This document shows positions 38,722 through 57,905 of a stretch of DNA of 64,000 nucleotides, in pieces. Origin of the DNA: Orbicella franksi (taxonomy: Eukaryota); contig OZ116712.1 in NCBI GenBank assembly GCA_964199315.1, positions 20,212,001-20,276,000 of the forward strand, read 5' to 3'. A program made the translations under genes and the position numbers. How positions within the stretch are numbered: position 1 is the stretch's first letter; each line of letters opens with the position of its first letter. Below the pieces are notes generated by a model, which saw nothing but the letters and a program-made list of their open reading frames with translations, searched no databases and had not been told where the DNA came from.

Positions 38722-41700
38722 TCAAATTGGTTTTAATGAGGGAACAAGTTCCTGGAGGTTACTTCTCCGAAGGCTTGGTCTTGGCATGTTGACCGGGTCT
38801 TAAAACAATTTTGTTTCATACTTGAAACGGTATTCAGACCAGTTGAAGGCTAAGTTACCTGAACTCATTATTAACTACGCAAGCTACTCACATTTTAACT
38901 CTTATGGATCAATACGTGTCCATATAGCTAAATGGGGGACTACTCCCTCTATGGCAAGTACTTGAATTAGGACAAACGGAACGAAAACTCGACTACCCCC
39001 TTTCCAGCCATAGAATCGTTTCCCTACAGCACTGACTGCCCTCTTGTAAACTAAAAAAAGGAATTTTTTCGTTGGGTCTGGTCCCCCGATCGTGTCTCCA
39101 AGTGTATAACGACAGAAACTTGTAAAATGTAATTTTTACTCACAGGTTACTCCTAAACATTTGAAGTACAGGAACAAAAGAACGTAGAACAAGAAGTGAA
39201 CAACGTATGCGAGTAGCTGAACATTTCCTATTTCGGAGCTCTGTAATAGAGCAGGGGAAGAGGGGGCTAGCATGAATTGCTTACGAGACTAGCCCAGTCT
39301 CACTTGAGAGGGTAGGGGTGGGGGAACTGAGTGCGTGAAGACAGACGAGTCAGTAACTAAGTCTTGTAGCAATTATAAGCGACGCACTGGAAATCGGTTC
39401 ATTACAATAAAGGGACACTTTTGACTCACCACAGAAGTTGCAGGCCTTGGGGCATATGGAAGTCATTCGTTTCCTGTGGTTTTTACAATATCCATCCTGA
39501 GCCGCTAGTGCAGCACAACCCGCCTCAGAGTTGTCAATACAGGGCTCGGGAAGCCTTTGTTCTGGATAGAAATTACACCAAACAACGTAAGGTGAGAAAG
39601 AAAGGAACAAGTGATTCGCCTGTAACTTTCGCGTGATAGATATTTATTGTTAAAGATGAGGCATGCCATAATCCTGAGTACGTGCACGGCTGATGTGATG
39701 GAAGAGTCAATAAGTGTAAGGTAAGGTAAGGTAACGTAAGGTGAAGTAAGACTTCATTTACAAAGGGTATTACTCCTTGCATAGGGTGACTGAGCCCGCA
39801 GTACAAGCGGCAATCACAAACGAGCTGTCCTACCGAAACGACACGCGATAATAGTCTTTTTCTTTGCAGCCAACAAAAAAAAGACAATGCTTAAGTTGTT
39901 CTGGCCTCTTTTAATACTTAGCTTGAGAATTCTGGGTTTAATTTGAAGAAAAAAGAAACATATTTTGTTCAAAATAACATCACTATTTTCCTAACCAGCG
40001 ATACTCGACGAGTGACGAGCGAGTTGACGGACACAGGCGACCCATTTTTGACGCCAAATTGAAACCTTGGACCCAGAATGCTTGATATTTTTCACTTTCT
40101 ACAATCTGATACGGTTATTGGCATTTTAAATCCCTTCTCGTGAATATTCAATGATTCAATGCCGTCTCCAGTGAGAAAAGTTGCGCGACTTTAGTGCCTT
40201 TCCCGTTTAAAACATGCAATGGCTTCGTCAAAATTTCGCCTGCTGAATCCTGAGTGGTCAATTCAAATATCAGGCACGCCAGGCTTATGCAAGGTTGACT
40301 GTAGCTCAAACTGTTCCTTGAAGGTAACTTAAATTGTTCTAAATCTATTTCAAAACGACGGAGAAACGAGAATACGTTGTCATTATGTGGACGACCTTCA
40401 GCCACTGCACACTATTGGCTGATAATGGCTGATTAACCAATCAGATTGCAGCATTTGCATTAGTATACTAGTAAAATTCTGTTAATAATGATTAGGTAAT
40501 GGTTTAATAGTATAAACTGAATAGTTCTATACCATAGTAGTATGATCCACTATTCCCTGATAACGCTAGTGCCTCGTCCAGTTTAAAACCCTAAGTCAGC
40601 GGCCACTTACAAAATTACAAAAACCACTTACCTCTCAAACAAGCGCTGTTAAGGTTGATGTCCGAGCAAATGCATTTAAACCTGTCCTCCATCTGTTGAC
40701 ACTCTACACCACCACGACAAGGGTCTCTGAAGCAGGGGTCATCTTTGTAAGGAAAACAAAATGTCAGCACATGGAAAATGAATTTCATATTTACAGGTAC
40801 AAATTGGATATCGTTTTCATCCGAATCAGCAACAGTTAGAAAGAGATCTCAGCAGATTATACAGGGACTAAAATGTAAAGAGGCTTCAATGGATCCGGCA
40901 TAGAATCTCTACCACTGAACAAGGAATCTCCAGCCCTCTTTTCTTCCCTGTTTTCTGTAGAATTCTAGCCCCCAACCCCCACCCCTTCCTTTCATAACAA
41001 ATCACCGATAGAGCTTCAGGATGCCATTTAAATGCGCTGTGCCCCAGATTCAGTTTTGTGATAGTTTTGACAAAGAGAAAAAGAACTAAATGACTTTAGG
41101 GTATCGTGAGATTCGGAGGTAAAATATAAAATCTTTTTTTTTTATCGACGTTGTCCTCGACGTCGCCGTCGTGATTACTTAAACTTCCTACTTTTTGTTC
41201 ATCATAATATAGTAACAGATGTCTTTTTTTTATCGACTGTAATGGTGCTCCTCCACGAAGCCGTACAAATTACAACAATCTACGATAAAAACTATTTGTT
41301 ATGATAACGAGCTAACTCACCTTTCATGGTTTGACAGCATCTCAGTGAGTTCTTCGTCTTCGTCAGAGCAGAGAGGAAAGCGATTTCTACATCATATTTA
41401 CTCAGTTCGTACGTCCAAATAACAAGATGAGCGATGCTAAGGTCGCCATAACCATTTTTGCTAAACATATCAATCAGCTTATTCGGTTTACCTATGGTAA
41501 TTTCATCATTGGCCCTACCCTTGCCATCAACTACCGTCTCTGGGTTACTGCTGCTTACAACAAGCTGGCCATTTTTATAAAACTTCAACCCACGCTTGTG
41601 ATTCCAGGTGAAAGCAAAATGAAACCACCATCTTGGGACATGGTCGAGCAGAATTGTCCATTTGTGATTTATCGTGGAGAGTTCAAGCTGAAACCTTCTT

Positions 41701-57800: not shown

Positions 57801-57905
57801 AAGTTTAGCGATAAGAAAAAAAATCACAGCCAAGTACTCACCGATGATGAGAACCCAAAATAAAATCCTGTTAAAAACAACGAAGTTTTCGATGTTTCGG
57901 ACCAT
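48807..57905 (-). CDS. Secreted LamG/ConA-like + EGF + ShKT + S/T/P linker + follistatin/Kazal protein (paralogue A), ~490-496 aa; exons 57905-57842, 54892-54689, 52831-52292, 51740-51618, 51190-51071, 50967-50779, 50320-50096, tentative 48832-48807
   Basis: Hydrophobic N-terminus MVRNIENFVVFNRILFWVLIIA. DHYWPM, LSLDGKDDWV, CVTEPSTCKEGFTMTFWLK, WTHMAFTW. EGF exon CVTNPC..CICP..C; ShKT exon CEDKSTGC..CPRSCDYC; ten-Cys follistatin domain CEVLEC..VCGDNDKSYLTMC..DGFC. All exons phase 1-1. Terminus is either read-through (GK*) or exon 48832-48807. Confidence 0.75.
52987..53205. repeat. About two diverged units of the same 106-bp repeat family, opposite orientation, in an intron of paralogue A
   Basis: GTGACCATTCAAATGAAAGTTATTGAGCAGTATTTTTATGTGGTACT matches the reverse complement of the 25.9-kb units. 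Confidence 0.85.
54237..54384. mobile_element. Palindromic MITE (long hairpin) in an intron of paralogue A
   Basis: First 26 nt CCAATTTCGATATATTAAAATTCAGC perfectly inverted at the right end; arms extend to ~65 bp. Confidence 0.85.

Follow-up and report, generated by a model that had tools for sequence, protein, structure and literature searches.

In a 64-kb stretch of Orbicella franksi DNA (contig OZ116712.1, positions 20,212,001 to 20,276,000), which we call the window and to whose full length all positions below refer, positions 57905 to 29200 of the minus strand very probably make up one gene for a long type I membrane protein and not two genes for secreted proteins. A preliminary description of this locus had proposed a tandem pair of genes, each encoding a secreted protein with a laminin G-like (LamG), an EGF and a ShKT domain. 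We refer to the two repeated units as cassettes: on the minus strand, on which the gene lies throughout, cassette 1 is the upstream unit (the earlier paralogue A, with a follistatin domain) and cassette 2 the downstream one. The window contains no runs of N and has a G+C content of ~38%. Besides 14 constitutive exons, our model has an optional micro-exon and, in the interior of the gene, an alternative first exon; splice sites were placed with the help of the reading frame and of orthologue alignments, by GT-AG and phase. Joined from 57905 to 29200, the 14 exons amount to 4608 nt, an uninterrupted frame of 1535 codons. GT-AG sites are present at each of the 13 junctions, and 12 of these are phase 1, which makes the module exons cassette-compatible. 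The N-terminal half of the 1535-residue protein consists of a signal peptide, a first LamG_3-EGF-ShKT cassette, a Pro/Ser/Thr-rich linker, a follistatin module and a second LamG_3-EGF-ShKT cassette; the C-terminal half consists of a Ser/Thr-rich stalk, a Cys-rich region with a putative SEA- or membrane-adjacent-domain (MAD)-like fold, a transmembrane (TM) helix and an 86-residue tail. The exons are as follows (a slash marks the splice cut).

57842..57905, minus strand: exon 1, ATG and signal peptide (MVRNIENFVVFNRILFWVLII), phase-1 donor ATCG/GTGAGT
54689..54892, minus strand: exon 2, N-terminal extension and first strands of LamG_3 no. 1
53908..53952, minus strand: optional micro-exon, 45 nt, phase 1-1, at the exon 2/3 junction inside LamG no. 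1
52292..52831, minus strand: exon 3, core of the pentraxin-like LamG_3 no. 1 with terminal CC (Pfam, PDB profiles)
51618..51740, minus strand: exon 4, six-Cys EGF-like module no. 1 (Cys spacing; 67% identity to Oculina)
51071..51190, minus strand: exon 5, ShKT module no. 1 (Pfam ShK, PDB)
50779..50967, minus strand: exon 6, Pro/Ser/Thr-rich linker (30% Ser+Thr, 17% Pro)
50096..50320, minus strand: exon 7, ten-Cys follistatin module, FOLN and Kazal (Pfam, PDB)
45923..46073, minus strand: alternative first exon in the intron between exons 7 and 8, ATG and signal-peptide-like segment
43247..43510, minus strand: exon 8, N-terminal extension and first strands of LamG_3 no. 2
41321..41809, minus strand: exon 9, core of LamG_3 no. 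2 with terminal CC (76% identity to Oculina)
40632..40742, minus strand: exon 10, EGF module no. 2 (Pfam EGF)
39430..39561, minus strand: exon 11, ShKT module no. 2 (Pfam ShK)
31964..33709, minus strand: exon 12, Ser/Thr-rich stalk, 8-Cys segment and putative SEA/MAD-like domain
30528..30675, minus strand: exon 13, acidic juxtamembrane stretch and single TM helix (76% identity to Oculina)
29200..29452, minus strand: exon 14, cytoplasmic tail (three conserved motifs) and stop codon

This model was supported by colinearity with orthologues. Exons and orthologues served as queries against Pfam and PDB profiles and in tblastn, AlphaFold2 and Foldseek. A scan of the LamG no. 1 exon against all 1.84 billion representative proteins gave 215 matches at E≤1e-3, nine of them at E≤1e-30, and the best full-length match was an Acropora muricata RefSeq protein of 992 residues in which a single chain runs from cassette 1 through the follistatin module and cassette 2 to a TM helix and a tail. 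A word-indexed search with this protein returned further RefSeq and GenBank models of 1340-1526 residues from A. palmata, Montipora, Oculina, Porites (two species), Stylophora and Pocillopora, as well as one Nematostella model. By tblastn, the models of Oculina, Stylophora, Pocillopora, Porites, Acropora and Montipora are colinear with the window over the supposed gene boundary: they follow 57905-57843, cassette 1, the follistatin module to 50097/50094 (short of the apparent stop) and cassette 2, and continue through 33.7-31.96 kb, 30676-30527 and 29532-29203. Oculina patagonica is the closest named species for this protein, and its RefSeq protein aligns with our model at 77% identity over residues 1-924, unbroken at the cassette boundary, and at 66% identity over the last 510 residues. 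Furthermore, the tail ending ...VTYKPPEWD of the A. muricata protein is present in the window as an open frame at 29.2-29.5 kb (minus strand).

Transcript-type evidence came from short Logan contigs behind proteins in the orthologues' 90%-identity clusters. One such contig (L001, from ERR9592210; 3078 nt, 98% identical to Pocillopora verrucosa) is intronless and contains a single uninterrupted open reading frame (ORF) of 972 codons, with an in-frame stop upstream, that runs from signal peptide through cassette 1, follistatin module and cassette 2 to TM helix and tail, skipping exon 12. Because the matching exons of the window are spread over 28.7 kb, this contig represents a spliced mRNA; in Pocillopora, both cassettes are carried by one message. 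Transcripts joining these exons into one longer membrane protein had been named beforehand as the finding that would speak against a pair of genes, and L001 is such a transcript in a relative. A second contig (L002, from SRR26351989, Acropora; 4170 nt) has an 894-codon ORF with its own Met and hydrophobic leader (M..ERQMNLT...), which continues via cassette 2, stalk, SEA-like domain, TM helix and tail. Its nt 147-224 match the window at 46105-46031 (79% identity, E=7e-14), where the ORF at the internal first exon begins MFSAGLIYRQMNLT... and shows the same M..RQMNLT start. The phase-1 donor of this exon (CAAG/GTTGGT, at 45923) allows an in-frame join to exon 8, giving a model of 1097 residues from there onward; a shorter version of the exon (46043-45977) was replaced by 46073-45923 after matching to the Acropora transcript. 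Since an Acropora transcript starts at the internal first exon, a cassette-2-only isoform exists too, and it is also membrane-anchored. Thus, the second signal peptide is real and belongs to an internal alternative first exon of the one gene.

Annotated isoforms of the orthologues are consistent in this respect. RefSeq lists 5-7 isoforms per species, and among the annotated isoforms listed none was without the TM helix; the term "secreted" of the preliminary description was not confirmed. Isoforms of 969-1007 residues skip exon 12 or use acceptors inside it, and exon 12 of the window has internal alternative phase-1 acceptors at 33097 and 32074, where AG sites at positions equivalent to those of the annotated isoforms are found. 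The micro-exon (53952-53908) adds 15 residues, two of them Cys; its peptide is identical to the insert of Oculina isoforms X1/X2, and A. palmata X1/X2 have a homologous 18-residue insert at the same exon 2/3 junction, so that the micro-exon is common to complex and robust corals.

The ends of the supposed genes were examined at the level of individual splice sites. In stop-to-stop frames of the minus strand at 38-58 kb, the exons described in the preliminary description are visible, and the end coordinate given there, 57905, is exactly the ATG of exon 1. Exon 1 is 76% identical to the first 21 residues of Oculina XP_078345693 (P0203). Exon 2 (85% identity to Oculina) has the acceptor TTCTCTTTTTCCTCATCCCAG/ behind a strong polypyrimidine tract, with weaker alternative phase-1 acceptors at 54916 and 54925. 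The ORF at 54893-54968 (minus strand; 'MKIERRF...LLFFLIPA') is this polypyrimidine tract read in frame and mimics a signal peptide; it is a trap for any ORF-based reading. We rejected a start of the upstream unit at the 54968 ATG, as orthologues begin at 57905. The earlier assignment of a signal peptide to the second unit was right, since cassette 2 can have its own signal-peptide exon at 45923..46073. At the other end of cassette 1, exon 7 finishes with the donor TGTG/GTAAGTAA, and what looks like a stop behind the follistatin module is the TAA within a consensus GTAAGT donor; the alignment of exon 8 with Oculina (82% identity) is unbroken over the exon 7/8 junction. The donor of exon 11 (TGTG/GTGAGT) occupies the same position as that of exon 5, which encodes ShKT no. 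1, and reading through it adds 27 residues past the junction Gly before a stop at 39352-39350. No TM segment lies inside 38722-57905, as had been stated, but the frame runs on to the TM exon at 30675-30528 and the tail at 29452-29200.

The two-cassette observation itself is real and far above chance: cassettes 1 and 2 align over their whole length at 32% identity (E=5e-57), and the domains named in the preliminary description were recovered. The pentraxin-like LamG/ConA fold ending in CC was found in both units by Pfam and PDB profiles, with Laminin_G_3 matches at E=3.8e-11 in cassette 1 (52829-52293) and at E=2.8e-5, under the gathering score, in cassette 2. Cysteine counts for EGF, ShKT and follistatin are 6, 6 and 10 in the cassette 1 unit, and for EGF and ShKT 6 and 6 in cassette 2. 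Both ShKT modules are matched by Pfam ShK (51188-51072, E=2.3e-6; 39559-39353, E=1.1e-4). EGF no. 2 is matched by Pfam (40740-40633, E=2.5e-4), and EGF no. 1 is recognized by its six-Cys spacing, with no Pfam match at E≤1. The Pro/Ser/Thr linker and the ten-Cys follistatin domain were likewise confirmed, the former by composition and the latter by Kazal_2 (50318-50091, E=3.1e-8) and by full-length alignment with the follistatin modules of FSTL3, follistatin, FSTL1 and agrin in the PDB (E ~5e-6); a tblastn search for a second follistatin exon 3' of cassette 2 found none. The sole PDB sequence match of ShKT no. 1 is the ShKT domain of MMP23 (2k72, E=5.7e-4). By itself, the LamG exon gave weak PDB matches to PTX3 and neuronal pentraxins, whereas a profile of 20 LamG_3 sequences matched a Limulus SAP-like pentraxin best (E=9e-7), followed by NPTX1/2, PTX3, CRP/SAP and further ConA-like jelly rolls. 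Given these profile matches, "pentraxin-like LamG" is a fair label, though the signature Cys is missing. The ShKT and follistatin modules are most simply viewed as disulfide-rich interaction or spacer modules, rather than as toxins or free inhibitors.

The membrane-proximal half begins in exon 12 with a stalk of ~335 residues, of which 35% are Ser or Thr and none is Cys; no tandem repeats were detected in 33709-31964. An 8-Cys segment follows the stalk, and no Pfam family matched exon 12. AlphaFold2 predicted for 32753-31965 a beta-alpha-beta-beta-beta-alpha-beta core (predicted local distance difference test, pLDDT, of 80-96) that is broken by a disordered loop of ~60 residues. In a Foldseek comparison with the PDB, the MADs of PCDH15 and CDH23 came first (probability ~1), with MUC16 SEA further down. 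We read this predicted domain as a SEA/MAD-like ferredoxin fold, an assignment of fold class only and on weak statistics. Inside the disordered loop, residues 1241-1244 are R-K-K-R, and R-[KR]-[KR]-R occupies the matching column in 10/10 aligned sequences, including two Nematostella genes. The Kyte-Doolittle maximum (3.29) falls at residue 1426, and residues 1419-1454 are the only TM-grade segment besides the leader. In the 86-residue tail, three motifs are kept in 10/10 compared sequences, from corals to Nematostella: GEF[VLI]P adjoining the membrane, [IV]DPSxPxITDVPxK, and the C-terminal GV[KQR][VI]TY[KQ]PPxWD.

How firmly does this evidence decide for one gene? We regard the correction of the gene model as solid. 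Several points weigh on the other side. The RNA evidence comes from related corals, so that the case for a single gene depends on orthologues. RefSeq models draw in part on homology and might pass a fusion on from one species to the next, but neither of the two transcript contigs derives from such models. In P. damicornis, cassette 2 was originally annotated as a separate protein of 366 residues (RMX46406.1). On the structural side, the AlphaFold2 model of the membrane-adjacent domain was built from only nine sequences and its Foldseek E-values are weak (0.01-0.1), and the AlphaFold2 model of a whole LamG-EGF-ShKT cassette (the 366-residue P. damicornis protein, with a 10-row alignment) reached a mean pLDDT of only 40.

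Among the alternatives to a single, always anchored product, the best is a mixed case, in which intron retention or polyadenylation after the follistatin module or after ShKT no. 2 gives a soluble decoy beside the anchored receptor. At both sites stops come at once on read-through, and the relatives show heavy alternative splicing (5-7 RefSeq isoforms per species). Nevertheless, 0 of the ~30 annotated isoforms in six genera end at either site and no such transcript was seen, and we consider this case distinctly unlikely. Two tandem genes for small secreted LamG-EGF-ShKT proteins, acting as a soluble lectin-plus-effector system in mucus, immunity or venom, are very improbable. An in-frame stop does follow each unit when the intron is read through, cassette 2 does have its own signal-peptide exon, and it was cassette 2 alone that RMX46406.1 modelled. 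However, both stops lie at or directly past consensus donors, L001 links the cassettes, the transcript from the internal exon still reaches TM helix and tail, no annotated isoform is without the TM helix, and no family of small secreted homologues was found; a search with the cassette-only model (P0238) returned only exon-sized fragments and Porites pieces. The tandem pair thus gave way to one gene in the orthologue models and in L001, and the soluble recognition-plus-effector or venom role suggested for it found no support, as the isoforms are TM-anchored and small secreted relatives were not found.

The protein does not qualify as an agrin, an adhesion G-protein-coupled receptor (GPCR), a classical pentraxin, a SEA mucin or a ShK toxin, since it departs from the features that define them. 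In our motif scan, the patterns for the pentraxin signature, SEA and GPS are to be taken as leads only. That the gene is an orthologue of agrin (the UniRef name of A7RRU4) or of ADGRD1/GPR133 (names given in A. cervicornis and S. pistillata) deserves practically no credence: it shares with agrin the follistatin/Kazal module, Ser/Thr-rich regions, SEA-like fold, EGF and LamG, but it has one follistatin module in place of the array of ~nine near the N-terminus of agrin, two LamG domains of the Laminin_G_3/pentraxin type N-terminal to the stalk in place of three C-terminal canonical LamG domains with EGF, and a cleavable-type N-terminal signal with a single C-terminal TM helix (type I) in place of an N-terminal NtA domain or a type II anchor; it shares with ADGRD1/GPR133-like adhesion GPCRs an N-terminal pentraxin/LamG_3 domain, and its nearest non-orthologous LamG_3 relatives include cnidarian adhesion GPCRs, but GAIN, GPS and 7tm_2 are found nowhere in the gene, and the window's only seven-TM ORF is a rhodopsin-family gene on the other strand (21753-23162). 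In detail, Pfam gave no GAIN/GPS match in exon 12 or in the orthologues, though true cnidarian adhesion GPCR matches show both; the H-L-[ST] motif (the GPS pattern) is absent; and instead of a secretin-type bundle of seven helices there is one hydrophobic helix, with no 7tm_2 in the orthologues.

Both LamG domains carry H-x-A-x-T-W (residues 171 and 640), which resembles the pentraxin signature, but measured against H-x-C-x-[ST]-W-x-[ST] HMAFTWRA and HFAFTWNH are without the Cys, and Pfam Pentaxin scores 13.1 bits against a cut-off of 25. Moreover, classical pentraxins are soluble oligomers, whereas here the fold is a domain of a mosaic membrane protein. With the SEA-domain mucins MUC1 and MUC16 the protein has in common its type I topology with a cytoplasmic tail, a long Ser/Thr-rich stalk and a SEA-like fold near the membrane. 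Receptors that are cleaved within a SEA-like module include Notch (HD/S1) and dystroglycan, and the conserved processing-type site inside the SEA-like domain is a likeness to these as well as to the SEA mucins. Exon 12, however, has neither a Pfam SEA match nor a G/SVVV-type autoproteolysis motif, its stalk is without tandem repeats, and the distal LamG_3-EGF-ShKT/follistatin modules and the tail are unrelated to those of SEA mucins. The best structural neighbours of the juxtamembrane domain are MAD12 of protocadherin-15 and MAD28 of cadherin-23 (TM-score 0.30-0.35 on the query), but at 7-11% identity and E of 0.01-0.1, and the coral protein has no cadherin repeats. The six-Cys ShKT pattern of ShK-type toxins is present with matching spacing in both cassettes; the toxins are released peptides of 35-40 residues, whereas these are internal phase 1-1 exon modules of a 1535-residue anchored protein, and nothing points to toxin processing. 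It has been previously reported that coral skeletal 'EGF and laminin G' proteins are neurexin-related and have canonical LamG domains (PMC4890752). These resemble the present protein as coral type I membrane proteins with LamG and EGF; the neurexin-like SOMPs (skeletal organic matrix proteins; B8UU78, aug_v2a.06122/06123) were absent from the named matches of the Acropora orthologue search, which bears on their relationship only indirectly.

The window protein clearly belongs to a group of hexacorallian orthologues that has no name, and it represents a new mosaic putative type I receptor made from known modules. The group includes Oculina patagonica LOC144631168, Stylophora pistillata LOC111334546, Pocillopora LOC131789508 and LOC113671517, Acropora palmata LOC141886102, and models in A. 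muricata, Montipora and Porites. The window protein has the colinear module order of this group and all three of its tail motifs; the coral orthologues are alike in module order, exon boundaries and isoform types, with 50-77% identity over the full length and no structural difference. No literature naming these loci or their UniProt identifiers was found, the orthologues being predicted as 'uncharacterized protein', and the matrisome and skeletal-proteome papers gave no description of this protein. The earlier remark that the combination was not recognised as a named family was correct; databases carry the family as uncharacterized or misnamed predictions.

Nematostella A7RRU4 (an old model, automatically named 'Agrin') contains both cassettes in the same order as in corals. 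Each cassette of the window is nearer to the corresponding cassette of Nematostella than to its neighbour in the window, so the duplication is older than the split between corals and anemones. The intron that splits LamG lies before G-F-N-A-D-C in no. 1 (54689/52831) and after ...Y-N-A-G in no. 2 (43247/41809); the differing positions would fit an ancient duplication with later loss, gain or sliding of introns. Nematostella LOC5517955 encodes isoforms of 716-849 residues with one cassette and its own leader, SEA-like domain, TM helix and tail (isoform X4 is without ShKT), and LOC116601495 (P0214; 520 residues) encodes only the SEA-like domain, TM helix and tail. The three tail motifs, the dibasic site and the Cys-rich/SEA-like domain are common to Nematostella and corals, but in Nematostella the modules are spread over paralogous genes. 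LOC116601495 and A7RRU4 (P0209) are on one chromosome record. Possibly LOC116601495 is the 3' half, left unjoined, of the two-cassette gene behind the A7RRU4 model; in that case the Nematostella annotation would divide a gene that is single in corals. A search with residues 350-716 of Nematostella X4 for the C-terminal module outside the family returned only Nematostella proteins; as this search needs shared 5-mers and covers only proteins of 394-1253 residues, absence of the module elsewhere does not follow from it. Remoter LamG_3 relatives comprise adhesion GPCRs with GAIN/7tm_2, an astacin-TSP1 protein, and MFS- and kringle-containing proteins, and none of these has the LamG_3-EGF-ShKT unit.

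From this architecture we infer that the protein may be a cell-surface recognition or adhesion receptor. The distal pentraxin-like jelly rolls would bind a ligand, and the Ser/Thr-rich, probably O-glycosylated stalk would hold them off the membrane. A proprotein convertase might cut the conserved dibasic site in the SEA-like loop, and such a cut would yield a two-chain receptor that is sheddable or force-sensitive, like Notch S1, dystroglycan and the SEA mucins; the conserved tail could recruit cytoplasmic partners. The displayed modules would be tuned by promoter choice, by the micro-exon in LamG no. 1 and by full or partial skipping of exon 12. Splice inserts occur in the LamG domains of agrin and neurexin, and by this analogy the micro-exon, together with promoter choice, might change the binding surface. 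A bolder version, which we put forward as unlikely, is that the protein is an anthozoan-specific (so far hexacorallian) furin-primed two-chain sensor in the style of Notch and dystroglycan, whose ligand binding by the pentraxin-like heads is switched by the deeply conserved, Cys-bearing micro-exon and by promoter choice and whose private, conserved tail opens a new signalling route. If it were true, cell-matrix, microbe or symbiont recognition would be possible uses.

If the single-gene reading is right, a single large membrane receptor replaces an apparent pair of secreted proteins with lectin and toxin folds, and venom or mucus-effector hypotheses should not build on this locus. The automatic names agrin, GPR133/ADGRD1 and 'ShKT domain-containing protein' would be misleading, and a conserved hexacorallian receptor family would be defined by its distinctive tail, conserved processing site and conserved alternative splicing. 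For coral cell biologists, it offers a concrete candidate surface receptor to seek in expression atlases.

Several other features were noted in the window. The rhodopsin-family GPCR at 21753-23162 (plus strand) is a 470-codon open frame with a Pfam 7tm_1 match at E=6e-62 and is apparently intronless; it lies ~6 kb past the last exon of the studied gene, on the opposite strand, and is not part of it. A tandem repeat of 106-108 bp occurs at 25876-26295 (3.9 copies) and at 52988-53205 (2.1 copies), translates to recurrent ...IEQYFHVVLFIMLYKV... ORFs, and has one copy in the intron between micro-exon and exon 3, where a related ENA contig (L003) also has the repeat. The 5.7-kb intron that separates exons 11 and 12 contains an A/G-rich, imperfect tandem repeat with a unit of 68-72 bp (36931-37238), which causes a strong AT skew at 36-38 kb and, on either strand, long low-complexity ORFs that are spurious and have no Pfam match. 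A (GACT)n microsatellite of ~62 copies at 14528-14777 similarly gives long SVSQ-type pseudo-ORFs. Finally, an exon-like frame at 11353-11670 (plus strand) matches Pfam NTP_transferase (E=5e-5) and is probably one exon of a sugar-nucleotide pyrophosphorylase gene located upstream in the window.

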